From contig NC_043021.1 of assembly GCF_006345805.1 (NCBI RefSeq), positions 496,001 to 560,000 on the forward strand: a stretch of 64,000 bases of DNA, in the 5' to 3' direction. The stretch is from Octopus sinensis. Taxonomy: Eukaryota. Numbering within the stretch: the first letter of the stretch is position 1; each line of letters starts with the position of its first letter. Below, piece by piece: positions 7,982 to 38,290 of the stretch. Position numbers and translations under genes: made by a program. The notes under the pieces were generated by a model that did no database searches, was not told the origin of the DNA, and saw nothing but the letters and a program-made list of their open reading frames with translations.

Positions 7982-9588
7982 AAGTTATTTTATTTCACAC
8001 AGGTAGAAATATAGAAAAAAAAAAGCTGAAAATGCACTGGGATTCATTTAGATTTATTTGTTTAAAAATTTTTAAAGACTCAACTTCAAATATAAGTTTT
8101 TCTCTTCTTCATTCATATTTTAGAGTTTATTTCGACCATTCACCTGCTCAGTGACAATGCCGGGGAGGAGGGGGAAATAAGAGGGTCATCTTGTTGGCTT
8201 TGTTTGTCATCCATCAGACACCCATACAACTTTCAAATTTTAAGGTCTGGCACATTCTTATTGTCCCCCAATAATTTGATTGTCTCAGGTTTATGAATTA
8301 TCAACAATCGAACTTCCGCCATTCATTCCTCCAAATGTTTTGGTTATAAACCCTATCACATTAATAAATGGATAGAAGGTGGGGCTTTGGGGGGGGGGGT
8401 AGACTAAGGGATTTGCACACTCTTCGTTTATGGCTCATGTCATCTCTCTGTTGTAGTTTTCTTACTGTGTTGATGCCATGTGTGTGTGTGTGTGGAATTG
8501 AGTTGGCAGTTATTTTGTAATTAGCTATAAATATTTCCAGAGTTGTTGCTGTTGTGTTTGTTGTTAGTAAAAAACAACATTGAAGAAAGAGAGAAGAAAA
8601 GTAACAACAGCACATACAATACAATAAAAATAATAAAAACAATAAATAATAATCCTTTCTGAAATTCGGTGGGGAGTAGGTACATCAGTTACATTCACCC
8701 CAGTACTCAACTGGTACTTATTTTATCGACCCCAAAAGGATGAAAAGCAAAGTCGACCTAGGCAGAATTTGAACTCAGAACATAAAGTCAGACAAAATTC
8801 AGGGTTAAGCATTTGCCAACGTGCCAACAATGCTGCCCACTCGCCACCTTGATGATAATAATAATCCTTTCTACTATAGGCACAAGGCCTGAAATTTTGG
8901 GGGAGGGTTGATTACATTGATCCCAGTGTTTCAGACCCCAAAAGGATGAAAGGGAAAGTCAACCTCAACAGAATTTGAACTCAAAACATTAAAGTCAGAC
9001 GAAATGCCGTTAAGTATTTTGCCCAGCATGCTAACGATTCTGCCAGCTCACTGCCTTAATAATAATAATATCGAATTTTGGCAGAGAGCCAGCAGTTTTT
9101 TAGGGGCTGGAGAAGAGTTGATTATAGTGACCCCAGTATTTGACTGGTATTTATTTTATAGACTCCGAAAAGGATGAAAAGCAAACTTGACCTCATCAAA
9201 ATTTGGTTTTAGAATATAAAGATGGATGAAATGTAGCTAAGCATTTTGTTCAGCTAATGACTCTGCTAGCTCACCACCTTAATATTAATAACAACAGCAT
9301 TTGGACTTCATTTATTTGTACCCCAGTGTCACTTTCATGGCATGCAATGCTCTCTCACTCAATAATAACAACAGTGATAAGAATCTGGTCAGAAAGAACA
9401 CAAAAGTACATATATACATATATATAAGAATAAGAAAGCATTCACAGAAGTAATACCTCTCAGCCAAACTGGATCTCCTGAAATCAAAGAATCAACAGAT
9501 TAAATGTTCCCCAACAGAACTTGACCAACATTCTTCAGAATAAAGTTGCACAACAGAATAAATAAGGATATATGTATGTATGTATGCA

Positions 9589-14852: not shown

Positions 14853-16654
14853 GGCCATGCATTTTCTGGGGTGAAGTTTATTGACTCAAACTTTATATTA
14901 ACAACTCCAGTAAAAGGTAAAGTTCACCCCAACTGGATTTGAACTCTGAACAGACACAGGAGTGGCTGTGTAACTTAGGCACAGGAGTGGCTGTGTGGTA
15001 ATAAATTTGTTTACCAACCACATGGTTCCTGCGTGGTACCTAGGGCAAGTGTCATCTACTATAGTCTTGGGCCGACCAAAGCCATGTGAGTGGATTTGAT
15101 AGGCAGAAACTGAAAGAAGCTCGTCTATATGTATGTATTTGTGTGTCTGTGCTTGTTTGCCCACCATTGCCTGACAGCCAATGTTGGTGTGTTTACATTC
15201 CCAAACTTAGTGGTTCAGCAAAATAAACCGATAGAATAAGTACCAGGCTTACAAAGAATAAGTCCTGGGGCGATTTGCTCGACTAAAGGCGGTGCTCCAG
15301 CATGGATGCAGTCAAATGACTGAAACAAGTAAAAGAATATATACATTATTTAGACAACATAAATACCAGAAAATATTTGTCCAATACTCTACAGATTTCT
15401 GGCAGCCCTCTCAACGAGTTCAAATATAGAGAGAAGGCCAGGAAGTTGGGGAGAGGGCTAGCATTTACTTTATATACCCTGAACAAATATTAAGGATGTG
15501 GATCGCATAATTAATATAATGGCTATAAATGGGATTAGTGAATGTCAAAGTAGGAGACACTATAAACTTTACAAACTGAGAGAGTAAGTGGATCATCTCT
15601 AAGTAAGGGAGACTACTCGGTATTGATGAAGGGAGGTAACTTGGTCTAACAACAAAATAGCAATTTGAACAGACGTAAGCGATCTCTGTGTGACAGGGGC
15701 AGCTAATGTCGGCTAAGTATACGGGGAACGAAGGAGGGTTAACACTATGAATATTCGCGGGTTACAATGACGTCAAGAGACTTGTAATATGTGGGAGAGG
15801 GTTAACATTTTGTGGGTTAATACTTCATTCAAGGATTATATGGTTTGACCAACTCCCCCATTTATGTGAAGTTAAAACACTCAATGATTTCATGGGTTAA
15901 CAGCCCACATTTAATTAATGTAGGCTAATACTGCATTCAAGAGTTAACCCCCAACTCCAATCAATTATATGGGTTAATATTACATTCAATGGCTAAATGG
16001 GTTAAACCACCATCACCCCCTTTCATTTAAGTGTATTAACAGCATTCAATTACCACATGGGTTAACCTCACATCATTTATCTGGGTTAACACGACGTTCA
16101 ATTATTTTAGCTTCTACAACAATAAAATAGGTTAATATCAAACAGGTAATGGTTGTTACAATACAAAAAAATCAAGTGGGATAACATAAAATGTAGGCAT
16201 GGCAAGAATAATATAACCCAGATGTGAAGTGTAAAGGGGCTAACACTTACTTGTTATCCTTCAGTACTCTTCTCCAGCTTTCATAAAGGTCAGGGTCAGC
16301 ACGCTTTATGTCTTTCAATCTTCCCTGACATTTGATTTGGTGACGATTCACAACAATTATCTGCAGAGAAACAAAACACGTATTACTATTGTGTGGGAGG
16401 AGGGGGGACATGCATGTGTAGAAATTACTATCGTGTGTAAATGTGTGTGTGTTCTTTTACTTTCAGCTATTTGACTGTGGCCATGCTGGAGCACCGCCTT
16501 GAAGGGTTTTAGTCGAACAAAATGACCCCAGAACTTATTTTTCAAAGCCTAGTAACTTATTCCATCAGTTACTTTTGCTGAACCACTAAGTAATGAGGAT
16601 GTAAACACACCAACACTGATTGTCAAGCGGTGGTAATAGGGGACAAACACACAC

Positions 16655-16733
<79 letters not shown>

Positions 16734-17222
16734 GACGGGCTTCTTTCAGTTTCAGTCAACCAAATTCACTCACAAGGCTTCGGTTGACCAGAGGCTATAG
16801 TAGAAAACATCTGCCCAAGGTACCACAATGGGACTGAACCCAGAACAATGTGGTTGGTAAGCAAGCTTCTTACCACACAGCCACGCCTGTATATATTTGT
16901 ATGAATGTGTGTGTATAGTGTACAAAACACTATTATGTGTATACATGTGTGTGTGAAAGGTGTAGGTGTATCTAGGAGTTTATCTGACTGTGTACGTGTG
17001 TCTGTGTTTGTATAAGTATACATGGCAGAGTTGGTGTGTACTGAATGAACAGGGAGCAAGTATGAGTAGATGAGTGCATATAAGTGTGTGTATATGAAAG
17101 TATGGACAGAGATGTAAATATGAAATTGTATATGTATGTATATGAAAGTGTGTGCGTGTGTGACATACAACACTCATCTTCTGACATTATACAATCAGAC
17201 ATACACTCCATTCTCTCCATAT

Positions 17223-17281
<59 letters not shown>

Positions 17282-20200
17282 AGTCACAAATTACAGAAAT
17301 ATTTAGATGAAATTATATATAAAAGTTAAAAAATTCTAATTTTACGGCAAATTGTTTCATAACTGAAAAACGTAAATAATTTATATTATCATATTTAATA
17401 TTTAATGATAAATAAATAAGTTACACCCAAACAAATACACACACACACACACATTTATGCAACATGGTAACATCAACAACAATAATGTAAAACAATGTCT
17501 GTGAAAGGAACTGACCTGATAAGCATTGTAGATGTGAGGAATTTGTGGAGAGACAAGGATAACTGTACGTTTTCTTCTGATCATGCTGCGTACCACTGCC
17601 TCCTCAAAAACATTGCGTCCAAGGTGATGCTCTATCTTGGAGAATGGATCATCCTGGGAACAGAACACGTTTAAATATGTTTTAAAGTTCAAATCTTGTT
17701 TGAAGCAGCTTTTCTTTATTTCCACCCTTGGGGAAAATGAAACTGTGACCTCGGCCTACAATGTGTTTTTTTTTTTATATCCATGACCCTTTTTAGAACT
17801 TTCATGACCAGTTGGATTGGGGAGGAGACAAGGAGAGGGTTTAACCTTCAGACCAGACATTTTGTTAGAATGCTTACAACAAAGTAGACACCTGTAAAGA
17901 ACAGCCAAGGACCAGGTGCTGGTGTTAAACTTGCAAATGGATCGATGATGATGATGATGATGTGAGTTGTTAAGTTCAACTCAATCTTTAACCCCCTAAA
18001 ATAGAAATGTAGCAGCCAGTAAATGGATAACTGGAAGAGTCCATGTAAAGAAGGTGGGTAGATTATGCTTACCATAATAATTGTGTTTGCTGAGGAATAG
18101 AGAGCTCTCGCAAGAGAGATACGCTGTTTCTGACCTTCTGTCAGTAAGATACCCTGAAAATAAAGACAAAATAAAAAGTAATAATTAAAAAGGTGATGTT
18201 GTTTGGTTGGTTGAGCCAGTTCCCACTTCTCACTTGCATCATCTTTATCTTTTAATAATATTTTTTAAAAATCAAGATTTAGCTTCTCAGAACTGCAATT
18301 AAATGAACAACAAAACAATTCCTAGAGATTTTTTTTTTCTACTCTAGGTACAAAGCCTGAAATTTTGGGGGAAGGGGCCAGTCGATTGGATCGACCCCAG
18401 TATGCAACTGATACTTAATTTATCGACTCGGAAGGGATGAAAGGCAAATTCAACCTCGGCAAATTTCATAGAGAATATTGCTACAAACGTGAGCAACACT
18501 GAATCGGAAGATCTAGTCTTCAGGGAAGCAACAGAAATAAATAAATGATGATGATGATGTTGGTGGTAGTAGTAATAATATTTGTTTCAAATTTAAGCCA
18601 GTAATTTTGAGGGGAGGGGATGTTAATCAAGACCATTGTCCCGCGTACTTGACCGGTACTTTATCAAGTCCAAAAGGATGAAAGACAAAGTTGACTGATA
18701 GGATTTGATCTCAGAACACAAAGTGCCCACAACAAATGCCACAAAACATTTTCCCCAACACTCTAATGATTCTGCCAGCTTGCCACCTTTGGCCACCAAT
18801 TTTTGAGGGGATGTAATTCAAAATATAAACAACTAGCAGTATCGCCCGGCGTTGCTCGGGTTTGTAAGGGAAATAATTATATAAGCATTTTTAGAGATGT
18901 AAAGTATAATAGCCATCTCAATATGGCTAACCACAAAGGGGGAGGGGTGTTACTGTAGCTTTTTACGTTCTGAGATTTAATAATAAATTTTAGAGAGTTA
19001 CTTCCCTTATATATGTCAAAAATGGATTAAAAATGGGAAAAATTGATGGTAAATTTTTTTTTAAATCGTAGACTCATCGTAGACGCGCGCTAATACCCAG
19101 ACAGTCTCGATATGAATCACGACTATAAGATACCCGGTTTTGGTTAAACTGCACCGCAAAATGTGGGAGTAGTTAGGAATCTAAATCGTAGGAGACAGAC
19201 ACACAACCTCACTTTTATATATAAAGATTTCCTCTATTTACATAATATTGAGGTCTCTTTCTTTCTTTTGTTATCTTACTGTTTTTACCAATATACATAT
19301 ATATATATATATATAAATATATATATAGTTACAGAGATGTACTTGCATAGCAAGTGACTTGATCTGAGATCGTGTGCTGGAACGAAAACAGTTGCAGCGT
19401 TGAAGGTGTTTATAAGCCATTTAAGAAACACACAAAAACCGTTAGATTCACTTCAACATTTAAATTTAATTTGTGAAAATATTTTCGTCGCTTTGAGACC
19501 GCGACCTGTTAGCACGATATTTTTGTCAGTGAACAGGTCGCGGTCTGAAAGCGACGAAAATATTTTGGCAAATTAAATTTAAATGTTGAAGTGAATGTAA
19601 CGGTTTTTGTGTGTTTCTTAAATGGCTTACAAACACCTTCCACGCTGCAATATATATATACACACATATATATATATGTATGTATGTATGTATGTGTGTA
19701 TATGTGTATGCATGTATGTGTGTGTGTGTGCGTGTCTGTGCTTGTGATTGTCCTCCACCACTGCTTGACAACGAATGTTGGTTTGTTTACATCCCTGTCA
19801 CCTAGTGGTTTGACAAAGGAAACAGATAGAATAAGTACAATGCTTACAAAAATAAAACTGGAGTTGATTCATTAAACTACAATTCTTCAAGGCATTGCCC
19901 CAGCATGGCCACAGACCAATGGCTGGAAAAAGCAGAAGAATAAAAGAATACATTCTCTGCTTTGGTCATATGTTGAAGGCATGAGAAAGCTTGAGTTTAC
20001 ATGAGAAGGCCTAACAGACCTGGTAGAAACAGCAGCCAAATCTCCCTCAAATCACACCTTACTGTCTTATGTATGTATATATATATGAGCCAATGAGGGG
20101 GACCTCTACATGGTAGCTAGACCTGGTAGAAATAGCAGCCAAATTTTCCCCAAATCACACCTTACTGTCTTATCTATGTATATATGTATGTATGAGCCTA

Positions 20201-23200
20201 TGAGGGAGACCCCTACATGGCAGCTAGACCTGGTAGAAATAGCAGCCAAATTTCCCCCAAATCACACCTTACTGTCTTATCTATGTATATATGTATGTAT
20301 GAGCCTATGAGGGAGACCCCTACATGGCAGCTAGACATGGTAGAAATAGCAGCCAAATCTCACTCAAATCACACCTTACTGTCTTATCTTTCTGCTACTT
20401 GGATATAGGTGTTATATTCGTCGTAAAAAAACTTTCCTGTCACACACTCACGCACACGCACACACACACACACACACACACGCACCCTCACACACACACA
20501 CACACCCACTCACACACACGCACGTTAGCTTACAATTTTATTTATATATTTGCGTGTCTGTGTGGAAAGAGGAAGTGGGAGGCAGAGTGAAAGAATCACT
20601 CACTACAGTAAGTCAATTACTTTCATTTTATTCGTTGCCCACTGTGTGTGTGCGTTTGCGTGTGCTGTAAACCAGACTAAGAAAAGCATTTGACACACAC
20701 ACCAGAATGTGAGTTTTCTGTAAATTTTGCTTAACTGGAGTTTAAATTTTAAAAACTGGACCTGGCATGACGCGATGCATTGTACTCTTAAAAATGCAAG
20801 GTAAATTGTAATTGAAGAAATCCTATATTGTAGATTTGTATAACTCCCAAAGGGAGGCAGATAAAATCTGCCTTTTATAATAAGAGATAACAAACCATAA
20901 AATAAATTTTTGTTTTTCAAAACAGTAAGAGGGAAAATAGTGTTTATTTTTGTCTAATTCCACTTTATTCAGATTTGAAAAGTTTCCTCCTACTTTTCTG
21001 AATGTTAAAGTCTTTGATCAGATCCTCAAAATTAATCTCAGGTAACACATCTGCATCTATACTTAGTAGAGATAAAGGCATCCCAAATATTATTTTAGCA
21101 ACTTTAAAGTGATTTCTTTTGTGCAGTAAACCATTTACCATTTCTGTGGTACCCCCTCCTTCCCTTGATGCCCTAAGCATGCGCTTATTTTGCTTAATGG
21201 TTAATCCAGAGCTGGTGGAGACCCATTTGCTACTCTCAACAGACCATATTATTCTACAGTAGCATCTCTTCATTGGCTGAACACTCAAAGTATGGCTCTA
21301 AATATAACAATAATGAGATGATTGACTCATCGACCTACCTGATCACCAACTTCTGTTCGGTCTTTGGCTGGCCACAAAGTCAGGTCTGTGTTCAGAGAAA
21401 CAGCATGGAGTACTTTTTTATATCTGCAATAAGCAACAAGTACTTTAGAGAGACACACACAGATACCACCCAATACATTATGTAAACACATACACACACC
21501 ACCACTGCCACCCAATCCAGTCCCCAATTCCTTATGGTTATTCATAGTACTTAATACTGAAGGTCTTCTCCATCAATTATGGATTCTTTGATGAGCATAC
21601 ATCCCAAACTGTTGACGTTTAACTTTATATTCTCCAAAGTTGATGTACCAATCCTGTCTCTTTCAACAGCAAGAAAACACAACTGCCACTCACACCAAGG
21701 AAACAGCACTGCAGCACACACACACACAGAGTTTCATAAAAAAAAGACTAAACATATTCAAAAAAACACTTACTTTCTATAATTGTATGGTTGACCAAAA
21801 AGTATGTTTTCTTGGACTGTGGCATTCATGAGCCAAGGTGGTTGTGAACAATATGCCAATGTACAGGCTCTGTAAGGAAACAGATTAATCAGTTAATTAT
21901 AATAACAAGTAAGAATGATATTAGTGAAAGAGGTTGTTGTGTTAACTTTACTGTTAGTGACTACAAATGGATAGCAAATTGTTGCAACAAAACTGTTAAG
22001 GATCATTTCTAATTAAACGGCAGAATATGTTATGAATGTATATCTCTGTCACTCTTGTTTCAATGTTTAATTTTTCAAATTTGCCTGATTTGGACAGAGT
22101 TGATTGAGGTATATTTTCTACAGCTGAATGACCTTCCTGTTGACAGCTCTTACCAATTTCCAAGCAAGGAAATAGTTATACATTGTTAGACATGTTTCTG
22201 CAGAATATTAGAAATGAATGACACCACCAGTATGGAAGTGATTCTCGTTTACAACTATTACATGATATCAAGACAAAGAGACACACACAATGTATGTGTG
22301 GGTCACACAGTGGGACTGAACCTGCAACCATGTGGTTGAGAAGCAAACTTCTTTACCACACAACCGTTTCCAATTCATTATATAAGAAATAAGAGATTGC
22401 ACAACCTAGTGATTAGGGTGTTGCACCAACAATCACAAGAATGTGGGTTCATTTCCTAGACCGGGTGGCGTGTTGTGTTCTTCAGTAAAACACTCCATTT
22501 CACTTTTGTCTGCGATCACTTCGACATCTGACATGTGACACACTTGTGCACCTGTACAGGTAATGACAATTTGATGGTGGGAGTAAGAGCTTTGGTGCAA
22601 CACAAACACTTGACTGCTAGAAACAAATCATTTGGGAAGGTTGTTCGGCAAGAAATTGCAGAATTGTCTTTCTCAGACTTGTGAGAGGCTACCATTCATA
22701 CATATAATGTAATGCTGGCTAAATTAGTGAATAAGTGAGAAAGCTGTTACTTATTTTCATATTAGGATAGGGACATAATTTCTGCAGTCTCTGTAACTCT
22801 ATAAACATATTAAGTGTAAAGCTATTTATTACTGCCACATGTTAGGAGTTCAATACAAAACAAAGTAATTAACATGAAGCATGAAAATACATCATTAAAC
22901 CTTTTTAAAAACTGTTTTAATGTTTGTTCATGACATGGGCATGTGTTTGGTCTGAGCTCACAAGGGTAGGATAGGTCAACACAACAAACAACAATAACAA
23001 TTATAACAACAATATATTTGGCATTGATACCACATCAAAGACATGCAGTCCACTCTGTAAAGTGGTTGGCATTAGGAAGGGCAGTATCCAGTCATAGAAA
23101 CAATATCAAAGCAGACAGTGGAACCTGGTGCAGTTTTCTGGCTTTCCAGCTTCTTTGGAATCATCCGATCCATGCCAGCATGGAAATTGAATATTAAATG

Positions 23201-26200
23201 AAGATGATGAAAACATACACACACACACAGACAGAGAAACATAGAAACATACCTGTTCCACTCCATGACTCCAGAATCCAAGACCATTTCCCCCAACATG
23301 GCTGATAACAATGTTGATTTGCCTGACCCAGAGGGACCAGTTATTATTGTCATCTTACCTACAGAATAGAACAACAACAGTAGTAGTAGTAGCAGCAGCA
23401 ACAGTAGTAGCAGCGGCAGCAGCATGTGGTGGTGGTGCCTACAGTAATGATGGTACCAGAGACTACCAAATATCTCCAACATCACCATTAGTGTCCAAGT
23501 GAAGCAACATCATTCACATCCTTCACCACCCATCCCTCATCCCCCATGCAAACCCTCAAATATTCTTAAAAGGTTAACCTTTCACATCACTAACCCATGC
23601 ATTCTCCGCTCCAAATTAGACCTCTACACCCTCAACCACCATCTAATACAACCACCACCACCACACAACTCATACACCTGGCAGAAATTAGATGGTGGTT
23701 TCAACAATAATCTTCCCAAATTTACCATCAACATCAACATTTTCAATTCCTTTTCCTACAATCCACTTATACAAAAATACCTGAAACTGCCTTAAACTTT
23801 TTGAGACACATGGTGTTTTGGTTTGTGTAGCCAAAAAAAGACCAAAATCGTTTTTTTTTTTTTTGTTGAGATTGAAACTGATGGGTACATGAAGAAAACA
23901 AAGGATAAAGTGCCTAAAACTATTTTATTAGTATGTAAAACTAAATATATATTATGAAAGCTTATAAATAATACAAAATATCTACCACAATAAGAAAACC
24001 TACAACAAAATACATATAAATATAGAAAATAATAAGCATAAATGTGCGTGAAAAAAAACAAAACATTATGTACCAAAAGACGATCTCTGATTGGCTATTA
24101 CACTTCAAAATCAACCATTCACAATATTTGTTTCAGTGGTCTGATGCACCAACCTCAAAGTCTTTTCAGCTTGTATCCTTTGGGCCAATCAATCGGCCCA
24201 AGTGTCCCAAGATGGTTAAGAAACAGCACAAAATGCTGCCCATCAAACTGTGGAGCCACTGAGCCTATGTTGTGTACATGAACAACACTTCCAGAACATG
24301 CATTTTCTCAGAGAACCACAATGATCCTCCTCATACCTATCCCTACATGACCTCCCCCAACTACACAGCCTCGTAATGCAGATGACACTCACATCTGCTT
24401 ATCATTTACCAAACGTCTGCACAATTATTCTTTTATATAAACCACAGAGAAACTTGGCTCCACTTACCAAATTTACTGTCTCCTTTCTTATCAGCAACAC
24501 CAGACACAACCAAATACAGCCAACCATGACATTCAGTATCACGCATACACACACACACACATATATATATATAGAGAGAGAGAGAGAAAGAGAAAGAGAA
24601 AGATAAAAGGCAGAAATACTAGGAGATATATACATAAGTTTCAAAGGCGTGGCTGTATAGTAAGTAGTTTGCTTCCCAACCACATGGTTCCAGGTTCAAT
24701 CCCACTGCGTGACACCTTGTCATGCATATCTATATGCATATACATTTGTGTCTGTGTTTGTCCCACCCCCACCCGCCATCATTGCTTGGCAACTGGTGTT
24801 GGTATGTTTACATCCCCATAACTTAGCGGTTCGGCAAAAGAACCAACAGAATAAATACTAGGCTTTAAGAAAATAATATTCAGAATAATCAGAGACAATA
24901 AAGTCAAAGTAAAGTTTACCTTCCTGAGTCTTGCCGACTCATAAGGGGCCGGTTTCCCAGTTTCTATGGCATATATATTCCCCCACCTGGAAGGGATGCC
25001 AGTCCTTCACAGGATAACTCATTTTTGACAGCTGAGTGGACTGGACCAATGTGAAATGAAGTGTTTTCCCTCAAGAACACAACGCATCACCCAGTCCAGG
25101 AATTGAAATCACAATTTTACAATTATGAGTCCAACACTCTAACCTCTAAGCCATGTGCCTCCACAGAGACAATAAAGAGGGCAAAACAACACACAAACAG
25201 GTAGCACTTTTGATCAACAGAAAGAACTGACAAACTACATGTTGGATCCCACATGGCTAACAGCAGTCCTACTTGTGACTTGTCATCTCCATAACAAAAC
25301 AACATGCTATGCCTTATAACTGGTTCAATAGGGAGCACAGCCACAGACCAACTACAACAAAATAAAAATATTAAAATTGTAACTGGCTCAGTTTATTGTC
25401 ACAACAGCTTTGGCTTTCATAGACCCTGCATTATGTAACTTTTAAACCAGCCCAAATATTCTACCAGTTTTATGTTGAAACTGGCCAGATCCAGCCTCTC
25501 CCGCCTACCCTACAATGTCATTCTAAAAGTGAACAGTCATAACATCAAAATCTTAAAGCTATGAGATAACGCATGATTAATTGAAAACAATAAGAATAAA
25601 TAAGGATTCCATTTGACAGAGTAATTTGAATGCTGAAGGGTTAAAAAAAAATGGTCACCTTAAACTAGCCCAACACACAAAGATATAAAACAGTCCAGAA
25701 CAACATCCTAAAAGCACCATGTCTGCTATTCAGCCCTGGCAAACATAACACACACACACCACACCACACCACACCACACCACACCACACCACACCACACA
25801 GAGAAATAGCTGCAACATCAACTGTTTCATTGGCCTCAAACATTCTGCTGGGATGTACAGCAGCACCAAGTGTGGAGGATGAGCAACTGTTGTGCTGTGA
25901 CCAAGTGTCCTTCACCCCACCACCACTGCTGCTGTGGCTGCTACCAGAATCTGCTGGTAGACAGAAAGAGAATGCACAGTCCCCACCGTCATACTTACAC
26001 CCCTTACCAATTTATCACTGCACGTTGAAGCATGCTTTTATGGTCCTGGGGACACACAGAAACATAGCATGACTGAGATGAAGGCCCTGTTGGTAATTTG
26101 GCCTGAATGCTATGCGACGACTGCCCAAACAGAGCTCACCTGGGGCAACACAACCACCACCATTATTACACTTTGCTGCCAAAAGTGATGATGAAGAAGA

Positions 26201-28387
26201 AATTTTGCAATAATATAAAATATGAGGGAGAAACTAAGATGCAGTTACAGGTAAAGAGAGTAGAGATGCTAAAAGAACTTACCCAGAGGGATTTTAATGT
26301 TGATATCTTTTAAACAGGAAGATTCATCAGAGAGGTCTGTAGAGAAAGAAGCGTCAGTGATGTCAAGGGCAAGTCGGTGTTCTAAGGTCGGAGCAGCTTC
26401 TGCTGTTTCTCCCTCATCTTCCGTGATGGAGAGGTTGCCATTGGTATTCCGTCGACGATAATGAAACCCTCGTCTTTCAGCGATGTAGGTGTCGTTTTCA
26501 GAAGTGATTGAGTGCTGTGAAAAGCTTGGCCGACGAAAGGCAGGGTCGAGGATGTCCAACACAGATGCCCCGCTGTTCTGCCGGCTGTGGTTTGGAGTGT
26601 GACCCAAGGGGGGACTACTCTCCACTGATGAGATACTTCCACGCATCGCTCCATTGTGGAACGCCATACTAAGCTGGTTGGTTTTTACATCATACTTCAT
26701 CAGAGTGTCCAGCTTGTTCTAACAACAACAACAACATCAGTAAGAGTGACATCAGACACACACACACACACACACACCACAAACAAGAAAGTGAAGGAGA
26801 CAAAACATGAGGTCTCAAAACGTTTATAAAGAGTAGAAGCAAGAGGAGATATTTTAATTGAAGGTGTATAGAGGATAGCAATAAAAGGAGATGAATTAGT
26901 TGAGGTTGAACAGAGTAGCAGTAGGAGGATATGTAACAGCTGAGGGTGTACAAAGAGTAGCAGTAAGAGGAAATATAACAGTTGAGGGTGTACAAAGAGT
27001 AGCAGTAAGAGGAAACATGACAACTGAAGGTGTACAGAAAGTAGAAATAAGAGATGTAGCAGTAGGAGGAGATGTAACAGTTGAAGGTGTAGAGAGAGTA
27101 GCAGAAAGAGAGATGTAACAGTTGAAGGTGTACAAAAAGTAGCAGTAGGAGATGTAACAGTTGAAGGTGTAGAGAGAGTAGCAGTAAGAGGAGATCTGTC
27201 TGGAAGAGTGGCAGTGATGCTTTCCCAAACTTACTAACATGGGTGGAATTGGTTTTGAAAATTCAGACATTTCTACATCACTGGATCTTGAGTCCATCAC
27301 CAGCGGAGTAAGAGTGGAACCTGTTGTCAGCCATGTGGACTAATTTGGTTTACAGAGGAGAAAATATTTGTAGCCTCCTACACTACCAACTCCTGCAAAA
27401 TAATGTACCATGCAGCCCACCTACATCATAGGACCATAGTGTACCATGTGGTCCACATACAACAGGATAGTGTACCATGAGGTCCACATACAATATGATA
27501 CCACATGGTCTACATACAATAGGACATACAAAGAGGTGCTGAAAAGCTCCTGGCTTTAAGGGCATCGTGAAAGGCCTGGTTAAATGCCCAATCTTCCGAC
27601 TTCTTTTACAGGGCTTAGAAAACCTAAAGGACCGCTGCAATAAGTATGAGAATCTGAGAGGGGAATACGCTGAATAAAATCATAATTAACTGATCCGCCT
27701 GCGTTTTCTTTTACCCAATAGATACAACAGAATGTACTGCATGATGTGGTTGAACTATTATAGAACATACTGTACCATGTGAACCATCATCACAGCACAG
27801 TACACCATGTGATCCATTTTACTATAGGACATTGGGTACCATATCCTCCTTATAAAACAGAAGATTGAGTAAACAGAAAACTAAACATATTTCACATCAG
27901 CAGTCAGGGAAGCACGAGTGTGTAAACCAGACAGGCAGCAGGATTATAACAGCATGAAACTATTGGTAGCTCTTTCGATTGTGTATTTAAATTCATATTT
28001 ATCTCTCACTGGATGGAGTGCTTTTTTTTCTTGACTTTACCTCTATTAGATCTGTAAACTATATGTGTGTGTGGAGGCGCAATGGTCCAGTGGTTAGGGC
28101 AGCTGACTTGCAGTCGTAGGATCATGGTTTCGATTCCCAGACCGGGCATTGTGAGTGTTTATTGAGTGAAAATACCTAAAGCTCCACGAGGCTTCGGCAG
28201 GGGATGGTGGCGAGCCCTGCTGTACTCTTTCACTATAACTTTCTCTCACTCTTTCTTCTGTTGGCCTGCTCGCTTAGCCAGCAGGGTGGCGTCATTTGAA
28301 GGCTAAAACAATGCGAAGCGCATTGTGACCAGCGATGTGTAACAACATCTGATAACCTCGTCGGTCACGGTGAGATATATATATATA

Positions 28388-28418: not shown

Positions 28419-29686
28419 TCACTGTAAGGAAAAGTCGTGTGTGTGTATGTATATATATATATATACATCATCACAGTATTGAGAAGGTCATGTGTGTATG
28501 TGTATAGAATGTGGGGTGTATATACTGTTGTAGGAGGGAAGGGACCACATGGCCAGATGAGACGGGGAACTTAATCCCATCTGATGACTCATTAATCCTA
28601 TCTGCCATTGAAGTGTTAAGGCAATAAATCAGATGTGCAGAAACAAAGCAACAGAGTGCAGTGTATGGTGCATCATTGTGCACATCTCACCTTACAATCA
28701 ATACAGCAGAACATGGACTTGGCTGACTGGACAACTGATCGCAATCGAGACATGGAGAAGGACAACTGAAAGACAAGTTGTTACAACAATGATGATGACT
28801 AGAGTGGTAGTGATGACAATGATGATGATGATGGTGTTATAGCAATGACATTGATGTTAGTGATGGTGATGGTGTTACAGTGGTAAAGATGATTATAGTG
28901 ATGGTGATGGTGTTACAGTGGTAAAGATGATTATAGTGATGGTGATGATGTGATGGAAATGGTATTTTGTGGAACTGACACTGACTGCTTCAGTGGTATG
29001 ATGACGGTGACGGTGATGGTGTATCGTGTAATATGTGACTGGTAATTCAAAAGAGAAACGGTAAAAGCAAAAATTACCTCTGCATCTTTCTGTACATTGC
29101 TTGTCTGGTGGCACTTGGTGAAGAAGGCACTGGGGTGTTGGCATATTTGGCTGGATTGTAAGAAGGATGTCAACTCTCGGCTGCTGCTCTTTGCATTTAG
29201 TAAAGATATGTAAATAACACAGAGGAAGTAAAAAGGATAACACATCACTTGGAAGGTGGCAGCAACAGAAAATACTTGGCCGGGAGTCAGCACTGTTTCC
29301 TTTGAAATATGGTAGTAGAGAAAGGTCTAAAAAAAGAAATAGGATTGAAACGTTAGAAGAGAATTCATAGAGAATGAACTAGTCATCATCACCACCATCA
29401 TTTGACATCTGTTTTCCATGCTGGCATGGGTTGGACAGTTTAACCAGTGCTGGCAAGCCAGAAGACAGTACCAAGCCCTATTGTCTGTTTTGGTGTGGTT
29501 TCTATGCCTGGTTGCCCTTCCTAATGCCAACCGCTTTCAGAGTGGACTGGGTGCTTCTTGTGTGGCACCAGCACTGATGGGGTTACCGAGTAACTTGCAT
29601 GAAAAACATTCCTCAACTGAGAGAGAGAGAGTGATATTGAGGGAGGTGGATTTATGCGATGTGATGAGAGAACACACATATTTATA

Positions 29687-29744: not shown

Positions 29745-30677
29745 TTTTAGTTGTTGCTCTGATAGATCACTTGCAGATATTGTACATACAGTTGTTGTTG
29801 TTGTTGTGTCCCTCTACTGCTAAACCCATTCAGCTCACCCACCCACTCCTCTCTCCTGCAAACCCTACATTTAACATGTCCCCACAACTGTCACTTTCTG
29901 GAACTTCCTCCCAGCTCCCGTCTTCCCCAGACTCACCAGTATGGTATGTCTCCTAACTTTCCTTCACAGTGAAAGGACTCCAAATGATTTACATCCTGAC
30001 TCTCCCTCAGAGTTGAAGGGTCCACAGTAGCCTGCGTACTAACTCTCACCTCAGGGACTTCCTAGAATGGGTCTTGTCAGATAAAAGTCCCTTTCTTTGG
30101 TTTCTGATACCAGAATGTGTATTCTGCTTAATGACAGCAGGGGTAGCTGCAGACCCCCCCTTCCCAGGTCATATAAAGAGAGTTGGAGCTGGTTCATATC
30201 CACAGGACCTGCCCAATGGCAAACAACCACTGGACCGGACCAAGAATATGTGGAGGTGTGACAAGACTTGGTAAGTAAAGCAAGAAGATGTTAGTAGTAT
30301 TACAAGAAGAACAGGTAAAAATGGCAAGGTATGTTATTGCATTAAAATTCTTCAGTTGTTCTTTAGAGAGACACATTAAACAAAGATATGTAGGTTCAAA
30401 TCACAGGAACTTACCGCAGCTGTTGACAATAATGGGGCTGATGTAACAAGGAACTCTGCAAGAGAAACAATCAAAAGTTAATTAAGAAGCCAGTAATCAA
30501 TGCACAAAAACAATAATCTGGTAGAGTCGTTAGGTTATCCCATCAAAGACCTTGTGCTTTTATGTGACACCAGCAGCCACAAACCCACGAGATTAGGATT
30601 GCTCAAATGAAGAGGGGTGTAGGGGGACTTGCTTGTAAGCAAACACATAGGTATATCTATCTATATACATATATACA

Positions 30678-30720: not shown

Positions 30721-33700
30721 CAGTAACTGCCGAAAACGGTCATGACTTCTGGGACTTGACTGAGGAAAGAAGGCCACAAATGACCTGTCTTTCAAATTGT
30801 TGTTTCTCTTGTCCACCTTGTATCGTCTTTCTGTCTGAATGTTTTATTGTACTCTATTGCGTTTTTGTTCCATTTATATATATATATATATATATATCTA
30901 ATAATAGACCTAACTGACTACAATTTTAACCCCTACACTTGGTGCTCCTTCATTTTTATCAAAATTTATAAACATTGGACATTGATATCTTATGGATGCA
31001 GTGGTGTTCATCCATTACCACCAGCCCCCTTACAAACCATTGTTCTCTAAGTTCAGAGATAATTATTGTTTTGTTTTTTTTGTCTTTTGTGAAATTATTC
31101 AATGTAAAAAAAACAGTGTTTTATCATTGTGTTTAGTTTTTCTTTGGTTATTCATGATGGACATCATCAGTTACATCAATGACACCAGTTTGGAACTGCA
31201 AAAGAATTCATTTACATTGTAGGGAGGGATAAGAGAGAAAGAGTGTATAAACTGACCAACAATTGAATTGGAGTAGAATACACACACAAGTCTATCTCTA
31301 TAGATTTTCTAAAGTTCAGAGCCGACACTGAAAGTTACAACATTTCATATAAGAAAACATGAATGCAAAGAATGCAATGAAAGACAGAAACAAATAGGTG
31401 ATATTTCAAGAGTTATTGCTTTTTCATCAGCCCTACATCAAACCCATTAACTATCCATGAACACATTGCTTAAATACCCACCAAGTTTTGTGTTTAATAT
31501 ATAAACTGGATAAACCAGTTTACATATTAAACACATTCCTGGTAACTGGTATGCAAAAGTAAAATACCCACCTTCGGTCGTGAATGACCATGGGATTGCA
31601 CCTGGAAAGTTCCCTTCCAAAGCACAACTTTGGGCAAGGTTGCAAATGGGAAACCAGCAATCGCCCATGCATACCAGCCTCCCCCTCTCCATGCCACCCA
31701 TGTTATCCAAGAGAAAGACAAAGGTCGATACAGCTTGGCACCAGTGACGTCGCAACTCATTTCTACAGATGAGTGATCCAGAGCAAAGTGAAATAAAATG
31801 TCTTGCTCAAGAACACAACACACAGCCTAGTCTGAGAATTGAACTCACTACCTTATGATTGTGGGCCCGACACTCACCATTGAGCAATGCATCATGGTAC
31901 ATACACATAAATCTACCTCGCATTTTATATATACGATCTGTAGTCAAAAAGTATCTGACCTTGATTTTTTTTTGGCACAAAATATTAATGCGTGAGCAAA
32001 ATCCGCATGGGTATGAGGTAACCATGTCTTTCCTGAGCATGTGCAAAAATTTCCGTGTCTGTAGGTTGCACATTTCACCTGCAGTGATGTGTTGAATAGA
32101 AACATGAAGAGTGTGCAATTTTTCTTTGAGTCAAGATGACCGAGTGCATTGAGCAAAGATACTGCATCAAATTCTGCCAAAAACTTGGTGATACGCAAGC
32201 CCAGACTATCAAGAAGATTCAGAAGGCCTTTGGAGATGATGCTATGGGAAAAACACAAATAAAGGAGTGGTACAACCGGTTCAAAGATGGCTGCACCTTA
32301 GTGGACAGTGAGCCATGTTGTGGCCGGACAATTAACAAAGAATACTACCTGGGGGTTCTTTGTCGCATTCATGAAGCTGTGTGGCAAAAACGACCTGACC
32401 TGTGGGCAGCAAAGAACTGGAAACTCTATGAGAATGCACCTACTCATTCCACCTACGTCATCCAAGCATTCCTCGTCATGCAAAACACACCACTTGTTCG
32501 TCAGGCTTCCTACTCCCCAGACTTGACTTCATGTAACTTTTGCCTATTCCCAAAGCTCAAAAAAAAAAAAAAACCACTCAAAGAGAGATTTGAGTCAACA
32601 GAAGACATTAAGCAAAATTCAACGGCACACCTCTACAACATCCCAAAAAGTGATTTCCAGGAATGTTTCCAGCAGTGGCAGGAATGCTGACAAAAGTGTG
32701 TAAACACCCAAGATGAATACTTTGAAGGAGACTAAATTAAAATGGTGAGTTTTTTAATATTATTTGTTTTTTGGCCAAAGGCCAAACACTTTTAGACAAA
32801 ACTTTGTGTGTATATATATATATATACATACATACATACACACAAAAGAGAGAGAAAGTGTGTGTGAGCGTGAAAGTGTACAAACTGACCGATGATAGAC
32901 TTGAGGTAGGCAATACGATACAACAATTTCATCTCCTTCTTTCGGTCCTTACAGACCAAACGGCTGAAACATTTCTCCCAGGCATTTAACTTGATCTGCT
33001 TGATGCCTTTTATTAGTTGTTTTACTTTCTTCACCCTCCTTTCACTGAGATTCTGAAAAAGAGAAAGAATGAGGCAGTAAGAGAGAGAGAGAGAGAGCGA
33101 AGTGGGGTATAATGGGTATAACAGAGTAAAGTGGTAGAGTCACACAGACAATCTAATGAAGTGGTTCTCAACCGCTGTATGTATAAGATTTTGGGGGGTC
33201 CATGCAAAAAATAGTAAATCGGGGATCCACAATAGTCTTTTATGGGTCCCTGAAAAAGTTTTGCTTTAGATGTTTGTATTGGTGTGTATTGCAAGAAACA
33301 GCGAGGTTTCTTTCTCTGACATTTTCCATTATTCAACCGACACAAGTTCATGAGTGAAAAACAAAATAGGAATTTGAAAGAAGTTTCTATAAAACTAGTT
33401 TTTGAACATGGAACGATTGTGGGGGTCCACCAGAAAAGAATAGCAATCAAAGGGATCCATAGATAAAAAATGGTTGAGAACCCCTGCTCTAATGGGATAA
33501 TGACATATATAGGAGAGAAAGCCAGGGCAGAAGAGTTGAACAATGACATATAGATGAGAGTAGAGTAGTTTGGTGTGACAATGGTATTTAGGCTGTACGG
33601 TGATAAATAACAAGTGGGGAGTGCAGTTGAGGAATATCAGCCAGCACCCATCCAACATACCATTATGCTGCCTTGGAGTCTAAACAGGTGCCGTGCAGTG

Positions 33701-36700
33701 GCAATGTGCATACATGTGTGTACGGCAATGATGAAAAAGCCCACTACTGCACTGGAACCGAGTTTTAGGAAGACCACGATAAAACCGACAACAATCTGGA
33801 AAAGAAATAAGAAAGAGAGAGAGAGAGAGAGAGAGCAACAGGTTGAAACAGGTGGTGAGCATCTCATACATGTAACTATGGCAACGGAGTTGGGCGGTCA
33901 AGAGTAAACTGGACATCAATAATAGAAAGGTGATTCTTCTTTTATCCTTCTTTTACTTGTTTCAGTCTTTTGAGTGTGGCCATGCTGGAGCACCACCTTG
34001 AAGGGTTTTAGTCAAACAAATTGACCCCAGGACCTATTTTTTAAGCTTAGTACTTATTCTATCAGTCACTTTTGCAGAACTGCTAAGCTATGGAGATGTA
34101 AGCACAACACTGGTTGTCAAACAGTGATAGAAAAACACATGCACGCACACACACACACACACACATGCACAACAGGCTTCTTTCAGTTTCCATCTATCAA
34201 ATCCACTCACAAGGCTTTGGTCAGCCTGATGCTATAGTAGAAGACACTCGCCCAAGGTGCCACACATTCGGACTGAACCCAGAACTATGTGGTTGGGGGG
34301 CAAGCTTCTTACCCCACAGCCATGCCTGCAACTATGATAATACTGATAACTGTGGAAATAGAATTGGTGAGGCATCCGAAATATGGAACAGAAACTGGAG
34401 AAGCTACAGAACTTTTGAACTAAAATTGGTGAGGCTACAACATAGAGTAACTTGTCTGAGGATATTTACAACAGGTGGTTGGTCTCCACAGTCTCCCCTG
34501 TTGTTTAGTGCCAGGCATAATTAAATTGTTCCATTTAGGACATTCAACAACCGGATCCAATCGGCAAAACTCATAGTTTCTGGTCTAAAGATGAAAATCG
34601 CCATTCTTTTTACCTGGTACCTATTGGTAAAACCCATCTATGGTGGATCCACATTGATTTGGTGTCTATGGAAAGGTTGCAGAATAAAAGGTTCTGTTGA
34701 CAAAAACAATATTTTAATTGCAAACTCATGCCAGACAAATACTTTGGCTGAATGTCAGGATGACTTACCTGAAGAGGTATTGCCCAGAAATAGTGCAAAA
34801 AACTGTAAATGATCATCAGGTTGTTACATTCTAGTGTCACGTGGTTCATTATTTCAGTTTCTGTAATTCTTCCATGGGACAAAGCTTGAGTTGATAACTG
34901 TTGTACCTTGCTGTATATCATCACCTGTAAAAGACCGGGTGTAAAGGTGAGAACAACCAATCAAACTAATATCCTATTGATCACATTGTGTATGATATGT
35001 ACAGACTCAGTTAATTGCTTAATCAATAATCAATGACAATTAAGGAGATAAGCAAGAATATTAGTGACATAAATATGTTGAAAATTGTTGCAAGTGGGAA
35101 TTAAATTACTCCTAGACTTATCCTCTCTTCAGGAATTCCTCTCTATGTCAGTGTGTGTGTGTGTGTGTGTGTGTGGTGATTGCTTTATCTTCTTGGCTGA
35201 TTGCCATCTCCTTCTGCTCCCTTGTTGTCAATGGCATTTCTGACTTTCCATCCATGACCTCACAGATGACTATTGTCTCACTGCAGATCTGAATGGTTTG
35301 AAGTTTAGATGACAGACAAAAGTTGTAACTTCCTGTACACTTCCATCTGGTTAGGTCTGCACACTTGGTCGTTCTTCTATCGCCATAAGACTTTCAGTAG
35401 ATGGAATGACAAATGGGGTCACCATTTAGTATCTAGAGACAGGCAGAAGGGGGGAAGAGGGGAAGACCAGTAATCATGTGAAGCTGCAACGTTTACCTTG
35501 GTGTTTCCCTCTCCTAGAAGGATGCTGTGGCAACAGCTAAGGGTCACTCATTCTCAGTGGTTTTGCTGCATACCCTAACCCCAAGCAAAGGTATTTCAGC
35601 ACCTTTGCACTTAAACAGATAGTCAGAATCCCAGCTATAGGTGTGCGTGTGTGTGTGTGTGTAAAAAATATTCAGAGTGAATATTCAAAAGAAAAGTAGG
35701 TTCAGTTGACCAGCTGACTGGAAATGAGCAACTCTAAGAACAGGAAATGGGAGCCTTTCAGTTATAATGTGTGTGTGTGTGCATGTGTGATATGACACAT
35801 GCACACAAGATGTAAGAGAAGATGGACGCAATAATAGGTAAGGACTTACCTGTATAGCGGCTTTCATCCTCATCCCTTCTCGGATGAGTATAAAAAAATG
35901 GTACTCCATGAGAGAGTACTGCAATAACATGAGTACAAACACTAAAGTGATGAGGATGTAGCCATTGGAGAAGAACTCAGTGACAGACACGTTTAAGTTG
36001 TCCTGCAAAAGAGAGAGATAATGGTTATGGTGTACATGTTGTACTGGGGGTTGGCATGGTTCATGTGGTACTGAGTAGGGGAAATGGGGGCACTATGGGG
36101 GAGGGAGCATGATGTGTTTTGTAATATGTAGTGGTGGCCATGGTACATGTGATTCTTTCAGGTTATCATACATGTGGTATTATGGAATTATGAGTGTGAC
36201 ATGTGATGTATATGGCACATGTGGAGTGGAGGTAGAAGTGGGAGCTTCATGGGTGGAAGGCATGTGGTGGTGGAGGATGTAGTTCTGTGAGAAAGACAGT
36301 GGATATGAAGGTGGGTGGGGTTGTTGTTATGCAAAAAATGTGAGTAGAAGACACACACACACACACACACATATACTTATGTAGATTCATGTGCAGACAC
36401 ACAAAATAACTTGTGAATATTCACACATACACATACACACACAAACAAGCACAGATATGCATACACGTATACATTTACCAACACAGAAACACCCCCACAC
36501 AAACTAGCATACACTCACCACAAATAAACAGACGCACACCTACACACAATCACACACACATATCCCTACCTTTTTATCCTGTAGAGGCAAGAGTGCTGCC
36601 ACAGTGGTCTTAATGGCGGTGGTGGCAGCGGTGGTGGTGGTAGACGATCCATTGTAGATAGAATAAACAGCTCCAACGTCATCTTCCAGGGAACGTCGGG

Positions 36701-38290
36701 TGACAGACACTACACGTGATGTAGCATTGTGGTGTCTGCTAGTCGAACCAATTGGTTGACTGAATTCATTACAATAGTTGAGAATATCTTCTATCCACCA
36801 TGGGCCAATGAATGCCAGTAAGTCAGCTGTTAGACGAAGACAACCACTCCAGATAATGGCCGGCCAGGAAGCTTTAAACATGCTGACTAACAAAGATGGC
36901 TTCAGCCCCAACCGTAATTTTGATTGCTGAAATGACAAGAGAATAATTGCAGAAATTTCACTTAAAGAATGGAGAATACTTCAGATTTGTAATAGAGCAT
37001 ACAACAGTGGTCCTTAAGTGTGGTTCCTGGGGCCGCATGTTACCCACAAGCATCCTTCCGCCAGCTCCTGACAGTCTTCCCTCTATACGTATAACAAGGT
37101 TTCATTTACTTGACTTGTGTCTAACTTTTTCTGGTGTGAACCCCTAAAAAAATCCAGGTTTGGGATCTGACTTGGATATTAGAAAGGTAGAGAACCACTG
37201 GTACAGAAACAGATATTTACATAGATGTGAAGCCAGTATGCTTCACTGGATGTGCAATGTCAGTGTGCATGTACGACAGAGTGTAAGCATCTAGAGAGAA
37301 AAGTTGGGCATAAGAGGCATCAGATGTGGTGTGAAAGAGAGACAAATGCACTGTTATGGTCATGTGATGTGTATGGACAAGGACAGACCTCTAACTGTGG
37401 AAGGAACCTGTGGTAGAGGTAGACCTAAGAAGACATGGGGTGAGGCGGTGAAGCATGATCTTTGAACATTGGACCTCATGGAAGTAATGACAAGCAACCG
37501 AGACTTTTGGCAATATGCTGTGCTTGAGAAGACCCATCAAACCAACTGAAATCACAGTCATGGCCGATGCTGGTGACACGTAACTGACTGATGTAGTCAT
37601 GGCCAATACTGGTGGCCCGTAAAAAGCACCTTTCAAGCGTTGGGCCTCATGAAGGTAAGGCATGCTAACGATTCTGCCAACTCTTCACCTTAAGCTGTTA
37701 CATATTATCACCATAAATATGTCACAATGTAACACCAAGGTGACACAAAGTTTCTGGATCCATTTCTGGGAAGAATATCTCAGTGAAATACTGAAGTTTA
37801 ACTCAACATTGCACATGTGTTTTATCCCCTCAGTTTTAGATCAGAGTAGGTACTAAACCACCAGACACTGTACAGTACCAGATATTTTAGTGTATGACAT
37901 AAATACTATACTCCTAGCTGCTGTATTGTACCAGCTGGTACTGTGCTGTACCACTTAGTATTCATCATTTAAATTAGTAAAACTGATCATCTGTAAAAAC
38001 AAGAACAAACCTTGTTGTTTTCAAATGAAATCCAAATCTTCTTGTAGTTGTATGTAGATTTCTCTGTCTGAAATATTAAAAGTGAAAACGTTAGATAAAC
38101 ATTTGAAATATGAAGCAATTGGTTACAACCAAATAGTCACAAAAGCAGTTCAATGAGTTGTATTGCAATCTGGGATTGAGGATGAAACATACAAAATCAC
38201 TGAGGCCTGTTACAGCTGGCAAAATAAATGACAAAATTGAATCTCGCCATCTCTTCCTTTACTTGTCTACAGGAGTTCATACAACACCAC

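Follow-up and report, generated by a model that had tools for sequence, protein, structure and literature searches.

Can a SUR protein lose the residues with which ABC proteins hydrolyse ATP and still be held in place by selection? SUR is the textbook case of an ABC transporter turned channel regulator: SUR1 and SUR2 are the nucleotide-sensing regulatory subunits of Kir6 KATP channels, and hydrolysis versus nucleotide binding at their second nucleotide-binding domain (NBD2) has been argued for decades through engineered Lys>Arg/Ala and Glu>Gln mutants. The question is raised by a minus-strand SUR gene in a 64,000-nucleotide stretch of Octopus sinensis DNA (contig NC_043021.1, positions 496,001 to 560,000; hereafter the window). 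A sequence-only reading of this stretch had noted several degenerate motifs within nucleotide-binding domain 1 (NBD1) and proposed a candidate pseudo-ATPase. That proposal is supported by the sequences assembled here and strengthened by NBD2 of full-length cephalopod orthologs: the gene is likely to encode a remodelled regulatory SUR with hydrolysis-dead sites, the first two-thirds of which lie in the window.

Within the window the gene comprises 18 exons, from 56534 to 5780, bounded by AG acceptors and GT donors. Its introns, 17 in number, are all GT-AG, and the exons hold 1,092 stop-free codons, or 1,099 if an alternative 21-nt microexon is counted. The intact frame and canonical splicing reported earlier are thus confirmed, and the accompanying figure of 1161 codons is replaced by these totals. 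The span first assigned to the gene, 16251-26330, does contain the motif exons; its right end fell short, as the A-loop codons lie 8-22 nt beyond 26330. Together the exons encode the N-terminal domain TMD0, the L0 linker, the first transmembrane domain (TMD1), NBD1 and the first exon of the linker between NBD1 and the second transmembrane domain (TMD2). The model was built by tblastn of the Argonauta hians ortholog onto the window, after which each junction was solved. Full-length relatives had been recovered with a long query built from exons recognisable by eye. They comprise the Argonauta protein, annotated as "ABCC9-like isoform X4" (P0121), and two transcript-derived cephalopod proteins (P0122, P0123); the same search returned 11 other mollusc SURs as well as annelid, amphioxus and insect Sur relatives. 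The Argonauta genomic locus has an exon structure identical to that of the window, plus 15 exons further downstream. The next exon (SNLGIPISRQ...) was not found in the window by sensitive tblastn, and TMD2 and NBD2 lie beyond its left edge.

Membership of the SUR family, as first proposed, is borne out. Among PDB sequences, SUR1 and SUR2 chains alone are matched by the TMD0 exon (E 5e-39), and the best matches of NBD1 are SUR2B and SUR1, with 40-45% identity to SUR1/2. Pfam recognises ABC_membrane, at 55.9 bits against a cut-off of 28, and ABC_tran, at 69.1 bits against one of 25, in the window protein, and each of these domains is present twice in the Argonauta ortholog. The order of domains, with TMD0 in exon 1 followed by an ABC transmembrane domain and then a nucleotide-binding domain, is that of a long ABCC protein. 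In a neighbour-joining tree of 25 proteins (Kimura distances, 1,435 columns, 200 bootstraps, MRP outgroups), the split between SUR and MRP, the monophyly of the cephalopods and a clade of cephalopods, gastropods and bivalves each received 100% support; the cephalopods sit on a long stem, and only short branches separate them from one another. No canonical cephalopod SUR was returned by searches with the window protein, with a canonical oyster SUR or, exhaustively, with TMD0, in databases where cephalopods are thin; the exhaustive TMD0 search covered 1.8 billion representatives and returned SUR-like proteins. The window gene is nested within mollusc SURs, no canonical cephalopod copy was found, and it is therefore the cephalopod ortholog of the mollusc SUR (ABCC8/9) and not an old paralog; the sequence-only reading had suggested a paralog. 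TMD0 itself shows about 50% identity between cephalopod and other mollusc SURs, equal to the gastropod-bivalve level, and a count of replaced, otherwise invariant columns shows that it is not accelerated in cephalopods.

A motif scan of the three minus-strand frames located every NBD1 string quoted in the sequence-only reading, each of them once and the intact Walker A among them; the intact Q-loop lies in exon 13 (Table 1). The motifs are spread over seven consecutive exons (11-17), with junctions that reproduce the Argonauta ortholog. No second Walker A or ABC-type signature exon occurs on either strand of the window, and therefore it holds no hidden canonical alternative exon.

The state of NBD2 was read from the three full-length cephalopod orthologs (P0121-P0123), not from the window species. 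In 3 of 3, GRTGSGKSS, PQDP and LDEATASID are replaced by GHAGSGRSS, PHDP and VEQEHTN(E/D)D. The Walker A Lys has become Arg (codon CGG in the Argonauta genome) and the Q-loop Gln is His; within the Walker B/D-loop stretch VIVEQEHTN(E/D)D, the Asp is Glu and the catalytic Glu is Gln; and IAHR has given way to TLHH. NBD2 keeps its H-loop His, its A-loop Tyr and an FS/TxGQ signature. The core replacements (Walker A Arg, Q-loop His, Walker B Glu-Gln) are identical in octopods and decapodiforms. The earlier statement that both sites are compromised was unjustified from NBD1 alone, and it now finds support in the remodelled NBD2 of these orthologs.

Two further features of the full-length proteins were noted. 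Four of the fixed NBD2 replacements are histidines, at Argonauta residues 1546 (R>H), 1593 (Q>H), 1675 (T>H) and 1705 (R>H), next to the H-loop His, which is kept. With the D>E, A>E and N>E changes that go along with them, the pocket is unusually rich in His and carboxylates. This composition hints at a changed ligand for the former consensus site. Outside the nucleotide-binding domains (NBDs), the TMD2 intracellular-loop motif P(S/T)GRI(L/I)NRFS, otherwise highly conserved, reads PTATILNTFS in cephalopods (Gly>Ala/Cys/Ser, Arg>Thr; Argonauta residues 1286-1291), and a cluster of otherwise invariant residues directly before NBD2 is also replaced (residues 1464-1491), which suggests that coupling between the NBDs and the transmembrane domains (TMDs) was rewired along with the NBDs.

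The comparison set consisted of about 55 non-cephalopod SURs, 15 aligned with the cephalopods and about 40 further SUR-family proteins, drawn from bivalves, gastropods, an annelid, a hemichordate, starfish, amphioxus, fish, insects and other representatives. The canonical NBD1 of these proteins reads F(S/T)W, xSGGQ, DDP(L/F)SALD and VTH, and the canonical NBD2 GRTGSGKSS, IPQDP, LDEATASID and IAHR; all of the approximately 55 keep GxxGSGK(S/T), the Gln and DEAT in NBD2. Isolated exceptions occur in NBD1: the H-loop His is lost in dipteran Sur, in one transcript-derived mollusc SUR and in one starfish copy; the A-loop Trp is Tyr in one bivalve SUR; and a single representative has LTPGQ, all others keeping xSGGQ. 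In NBD1, 7 of 43 columns that are otherwise invariant are replaced in cephalopods (0-4 in other clades), and in NBD2 20 of the 63 columns that are invariant in the 15 other aligned SURs (0-5 in other clades), the latter nearly always by one fixed residue; these changes go beyond ordinary divergence. Fifteen of these 20 lie in or beside Walker A, the Q-loop, the stretch before the signature, the Walker B/D-loop or the H-loop. The motif changes are cephalopod-specific, and the possibility that LTEGQ-type motifs are routine in invertebrate SURs is ruled out by this canonical comparison set. Within NBD1, the A-loop position, W in nearly all other SURs, is T, T, M and K in the four cephalopods, the H-loop position is P, P, S and T, and the D-loop reads SKIE, SKIE, ATIE and STME; this variability suggests relaxed constraint at those positions of site 1.

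Partial degeneracy of NBD1 was also seen elsewhere, among the SUR-like proteins P0171, P0273 and P0342/P0344/P0389. A 1,447-residue protein has GPNAGGKTS and LTPGQ in NBD1 with a canonical NBD2, another reads GKDGSGKET, LSQGQ and NEPFSALQ, and in dipteran Sur NBD1 carries VTQQ and the NBD2 signature is LSAGH. In none of them is the NBD2 Walker A or Walker B remodelled.

Four sources show the degenerate NBD1 motifs: two are genomic, the window and Argonauta hians, and two are sets of RNA-seq contigs, free of introns, from two further lineages, both decapodiform. One is Sepia- or cuttlefish-like, its 90% cluster holding an Acanthosepion pharaonis fragment and eight more near-full-length transcript contigs, and the other represents a third cephalopod lineage. 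Every RNA-derived cephalopod contig reads LTEGQ and not LSGGQ. Selection was gauged from pairwise Nei-Gojobori counts among the cephalopod orthologs. The proportion of synonymous differences (pS) is 0.65-0.9, which is saturated, and that of nonsynonymous differences (pN) is 0.04-0.15 in NBD1 and 0.03-0.11 in NBD2. As the Jukes-Cantor-corrected synonymous rate (dS) is undefined for most pairs owing to saturation, pN and pS are reported and the ratios of nonsynonymous to synonymous rates (dN/dS), 0.008-0.09 where dS is correctable, are rough upper-level indications; they are nevertheless far from the value near 1 that a decaying gene would show. Within the cephalopods the NBDs are more conserved than the TMDs, and NBD2 is the most conserved domain (83-95% identity). 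TMD0 is 96% identical between octopods (exon 1 against Argonauta, dN/dS about 0.008) and about 80% identical between octopods and decapodiforms, with dN/dS of about 0.008-0.08 overall. The gene is under strong purifying selection and, being also intact, canonically spliced and transcribed in relatives, is not a pseudogene, as had been argued from the frame and the splice sites.

To read these changes in functional terms, the vertebrate structures provide a reference. In SUR2, ATP at the degenerate site stacks on the A-loop residue W677, the consensus site holds Mg-ADP through the NBD2 P-loop, the Q-loop residue Q1390 and the Walker B residue E1470, and Mg-ADP at NBD2 drives an asymmetric NBD dimer that leads to channel opening (PMC9106677). 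In SUR1, the NBD2 Walker A mutation K1384A impairs activation by Mg-nucleotide (PMC6400584). At the sequence level, neither site of the cephalopod protein has a catalytic set of residues. Site 1 retains Asp-Asp and FS/TxGQ; like that of all ABCCs it has no catalytic Glu, and in addition its A-loop aromatic is gone (Trp replaced by Thr, Met or Lys) and its H-loop His is lost. Site 2 departs from the canonical consensus site on both faces, with the Glu of LTEGQ in the partner signature of the window and, in the three orthologs, an NBD2 without the Lys, Asp, Glu and Gln. Walker A Lys>Arg and catalytic Glu>Gln are standard substitutions for inactivating ABC ATPases, and either suffices by itself. 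The protein is probably hydrolysis-dead because NBD2 of the orthologs lacks these four residues, needed at the sole potentially catalytic site, and it very probably represents an ABC protein that has become non-enzymatic in nature.

The residues lining both composite nucleotide sites were replaced, apparently on the coleoid stem. NBD1 lost the A-loop Trp and the H-loop His, and its LSGGQ and SALD became LTEGQ and SKIE, while it kept its Walker A, its Q-loop and an Asp-Asp Walker B; in NBD2, as seen in the orthologs, the Walker A Lys became Arg, the Q-loop Gln His and the Walker B Asp-Glu Glu-Gln, with neighbouring residues changing too. Such a protein would not hydrolyse ATP and would have no canonical vertebrate-type Mg-ADP switch. 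It would most likely act as a non-enzymatic regulatory subunit that docks a partner channel through its highly conserved TMD0. In vertebrate SURs, TMD0 is the five-helix N-terminal domain that docks Kir6, and its very strong conservation in cephalopods suggests that a partner channel is still docked. The NBDs would be retained as a remodelled regulatory or ligand-binding module; they look repurposed and not decayed, given replacements that are both conservative and fixed, and a P-loop that is intact in each NBD. This SUR may be fine-tuned by a Lys-Arg-Ser-Ser microexon, alternatively spliced after NBD1, and possibly also by A-to-I recoding of its RNA.

The microexon lies in the 10.4-kb intron between exons 17 and 18, in phase with both. 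In the window species its basis is genomic; in independent decapodiform transcript contigs the corresponding cassette, RCSLAER or RSSLAER, is included or skipped, as are two other cassettes, KNVVPER and IQTWLKR. The context around its first Ser reads Lys-Arg-Ser-Ser and resembles a site for basophilic kinases. It looks like a conserved alternative microexon adding a possible phosphorylation site after NBD1. RSSLAER did not turn up in the Argonauta intron, no match to a second cassette of the KNVVPER type came from a pattern scan, and blastn of the 10-kb window intron against the Argonauta intron gave microsatellite matches only.

Variation among transcripts of the cuttlefish-like set (L001; P0122, P0151-P0160) was also noted. 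Between assemblies, I201M, K563R, Q938R and K1079R each need an A>G change, and Q938R turns the X-loop TEVGEQG into canonical TEVGERG. One member differing at many sites, maybe of another species, was left out of this pattern, and an E>V difference at position 14 in P0154 does not fit it. The A>G-type variants are consistent with A-to-I recoding. The Glu codon of LTEGQ is GAA at window positions 18136-18138 (GAG in L003), and one second-position edit would give LTGGQ; all RNA-derived contigs keep this Glu, and the other degenerate residues are not restorable by A>G.

Several points weigh against a hydrolysis-dead SUR in the window species. Its NBD2 is taken from orthologs, the nearest of which, Argonauta, is 86% identical over aligned residues. 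The searched databases cover cephalopod proteomes thinly, and a second, canonical cephalopod copy, though unlikely, may have been missed. In chemical terms the replacements in NBD2 are conservative (K>R, D>E, E>Q, Q>H); both NBDs retain their P-loop glycines, and NBD2 retains its A-loop Tyr and its signature, so that nucleotide binding may persist. Activation of vertebrate SURs is mainly a matter of Mg-ADP binding and not of hydrolysis, and loss of hydrolysis might alter physiology less than the term pseudo-ATPase implies. The change in the NBD1 signature repeats that of CFTR G550E, which yields LSEGQ and is tolerated and even enhances function (PMC10202470). Finally, the NBD1 changes alone would prove little, because the NBD1 signature of SUR2 stays away from the consensus-site nucleotide in the activated structures (PMC9106677).

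Beyond hydrolysis, the readings differ in what the NBDs still do. There is a substantial chance that the protein is a nucleotide-binding, non-hydrolysing sensor, which would still couple metabolism to the channel with altered affinity or kinetics, and whose binding could, for example, be Mg-independent, as nucleotide binding at site 2 of SUR1 is (PMC6400584). It would resemble a naturally fixed counterpart of engineered mutants, E>Q and K>R, in which nucleotide states are trapped or weakened. The changes are non-random, being conservative and fixed; the P-loop glycines, the NBD1 Walker A Lys and Q-loop, and the NBD2 A-loop Tyr and FS/TxGQ are all kept; and NBD2 is the best conserved domain. 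Set against this are the variable A-loop, H-loop and D-loop of NBD1, which suggest relaxed constraint at site 1, and the fact that all three side chains holding Mg-nucleotide at site 2 are changed.

Somewhat less probable is that the protein is insensitive to nucleotide, its NBDs being conserved only for folding, trafficking, partner contacts or phosphorylation-dependent regulation. The loss of contact residues from both sites, the altered TMD2 motif GRILNRFS together with other replaced TMD columns that are otherwise invariant, and the alternatively spliced Lys-Arg-Ser-Ser cassette would all fit such a scaffold. Strict conservation of the remodelled site-2 residues and of both P-loops in coleoids is hard to explain for an empty pocket. 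We slightly prefer NBDs that still bind nucleotide.

That the former consensus site has been converted to sense another signal is unlikely, though the idea has a specific basis: the fixed replacements add four histidines (GHAGSGRSS, PHDP, EQEH, TLHH) and carboxylates beside the H-loop His. Possible ligands of such a pocket are a metal ion, protons or a nucleotide bound in a Mg-free mode. If this were so, a KATP-like complex would be gated by a signal other than the ADP/ATP ratio, and microexon splicing and A-to-I recoding could tune it.

We regard a working ATPase or transporter with unconventional catalytic residues as improbable. NBD2 keeps its H-loop His and has Glu at the Walker B Asp position, and single non-canonical residues are tolerated in some ABC proteins, CFTR G550E being an example (PMC10202470); here, though, the sole potentially catalytic site combines Lys>Arg in Walker A, a Gln for the catalytic Glu, a His for the Q-loop Gln and, from the partner signature, a Glu. 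Still harder to sustain is the restoration of canonical residues after transcription by A-to-I editing or alternative exons. One edit would convert the signature Glu codon (GAA/GAG) to Gly (GGA/GGG), and the variants within the Sepia-like lineage are of the A>G type, one of them giving a canonical X-loop. Nonetheless, LTEGQ stands in all RNA-derived contigs, editing cannot make Arg to Lys, Gln to Glu, Glu to Asp, His to Gln or Thr/Met/Lys to Trp, and the window has no alternative Walker A or signature exon. A pseudogene, or an assembly or sequencing artefact, has nothing in its favour besides the odd motifs themselves and is ruled out for practical purposes by the stop-free spliced frame of 1,092 codons with 17 canonical introns, by dN/dS far below 1 with saturated dS, and by identical motifs in independent genome and RNA-seq assemblies, the RNA-seq covering two lineages and several contigs.

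Table 1. Exons and NBD1 motifs of the SUR gene in the window, with the basis for each.
Feature	Residues (aa)	Position	Strand	Basis
Exon 1: start codon and TMD0	1-216	55887..56534	-	tblastn with P0121; GTGAGT donor
Exon 2: L0 linker (KYAFFQEP...LGKLPM)	217-276	45133..45312	-	tblastn; AG/GT junctions
Exon 3: L0 linker	277-295	38011..38067	-	tblastn and junctions
Exon 4: start of TMD1, Thr/Ser-rich extracellular insert	296-414	36570..36926	-	tblastn and junctions
Exon 5: TMD1	415-465	35850..36002	-	tblastn and junctions; Pfam ABC_membrane spans aa 412-659
Exon 6: TMD1	466-517	34769..34924	-	tblastn and junctions
Exon 7: TMD1	518-562	33661..33795	-	tblastn and junctions
Exon 8: TMD1 intracellular loop	563-616	32890..33052	-	tblastn and junctions
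Exon 9: 41-nt TMD1 exon EFLVTSAPLLSTA	617-630	30415..30455	-	sensitive tblastn; junctions
Exon 10: last TMD1 helix and start of TMD1-NBD1 linker	631-713	29078..29326	-	tblastn and junctions
Exon 11: linker and first NBD1 strand, with A-loop position ASFST	714-858	26283..26718	-	tblastn, junctions, motif scan
A-loop position ASFST (Thr where other SURs have Trp or Tyr)		26352-26338	-	motif scan
Exon 12: NBD1 Walker A GPSGSGKST, intact	859-893	23253..23358	-	motif scan, junctions, alignment
Walker A GPSGSGKST		23338-23312	-	motif scan
Exon 13: NBD1 Q-loop CSQPPW, intact; ACTLAYCSQPPWLMNATVQENILFG	894-925	21774..21869	-	tblastn, junctions, alignment
Q-loop CSQ, Gln codon		21844-21842	-	exon 13
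Exon 14: X-loop TEVGDQ(G)	926-954	21339..21423	-	motif scan, junctions, alignment
X-loop TEVGDQ (canonical TEIGEKG/TEIGERG)		21356-21339	-	motif scan
Exon 15: signature LTEGQ and beginning of Walker B (ANTIIM)	955-981	18073..18153	-	motif scan, junctions, alignment
Signature LTEGQ instead of LSGGQ		18144-18130	-	motif scan
Exon 16: Walker B Asp-Asp, D-loop SKIE, H-loop VSPQ	982-1027	17516..17653	-	motif scan, junctions, alignment
Walker B/D-loop DDPFSKIE (SKIE instead of SALD)		17653-17630	-	motif scan
H-loop VSPQ instead of VTH		17554-17543	-	motif scan
Exon 17: C-terminal strands and helix of NBD1	1028-1063	16251..16360	-	tblastn and junctions
Putative alternative microexon of 21 nt, GAGATCCAGTTTGGCTGAGAG; would add RSSLAE(R) after NBD1, ahead of exon 18		9457..9477	-	in phase; TTTCAG/GTATTA flanks
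Exon 18: NBD1-TMD2 linker QDIDHELDKHRRTSFDHISEPVHKLSIQ; last exon in the window	1064-1092	5780..5864	-	tblastn (including sensitive) and junctions

The surrounding DNA is eukaryotic, AT-rich and laden with repeats. Positions 1-4998 form a 5-kb tandem satellite of an 18-nt unit, ACTAACACCAAAACAGGG, in about 270 copies with higher-order periods of 37 and 55 nt and a strong A-over-T skew, which fills the in-window part of the intron downstream of exon 18. Intronic stretches at 7132-7794 and 46136-46931 (minus strand) contain stop-free fragments resembling decayed mobile elements, with RVT_1 at 17 bits (below cut-off) beside a PHD-finger-like open reading frame (PHD marginally at cut-off); further up there are pieces that look by eye like a DDE transposase, with an adjoining open reading frame showing weak HTH_23 similarity (18 bits, below cut-off). 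An interspersed repeat translating as ...HPVHSVKWL(A/V)LGRA(S)SHRNH... occurs in several introns and in both orientations (minus strand, for example 62335-62168, 53817-53665, 51924-51676, 39153-38929 and 29536-29330; plus strand, 23018-23197) and is probably a SINE-like or other short mobile element.

Our literature search found no paper on cephalopod SUR or KATP subunits, and a search for ABC proteins with both sites degenerate found only systems with one degenerate site. If confirmed biochemically, the cephalopod SUR would be a rare full-length ABC protein in which both sites are non-catalytic. It would also let nature show what the NBDs of a SUR do once catalysis is gone, and would hint that animals with large nervous systems can wire the metabolic sensing of excitability differently.

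Compared with vertebrate SUR1 and SUR2 (ABCC8/ABCC9), the cephalopod protein has the same architecture, TMD0-L0-TMD1-NBD1 in the window and TMD0-L0-TMD1-NBD1-TMD2-NBD2 in the orthologs, and the SUR-type DDPFS Walker B in NBD1, whereas the vertebrate proteins keep GRTGSGKSS, the Gln and DEAT in NBD2, and LSGGQ and the A-loop Trp in NBD1, for sensing Mg-ADP and ATP. It is orthologous to the SURs of other invertebrates (mollusc, annelid, echinoderm, amphioxus ABCC9-like and insect Sur) and nests among those of gastropods and bivalves; unlike them, cephalopods are the only clade found with a remodelled consensus site. With CFTR, MRP1 and other SURs, ABCC proteins with one degenerate site, it shares the NBD1 Asp-Asp and the NBD2 FSxGQ that form the usual degenerate site, but its second, normally catalytic site is degenerate too. 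It also resembles the dead mutants made by engineering, with E>Q in Walker B or K>R/A in Walker A: two substitutions used by experimenters to abolish hydrolysis are present in cephalopod NBD2. Coleoids appear to carry K>R and E>Q naturally, fixed and under strong constraint in what is seemingly their only SUR, and in contrast to the engineered mutants this state has been fixed by evolution over a whole animal clade.

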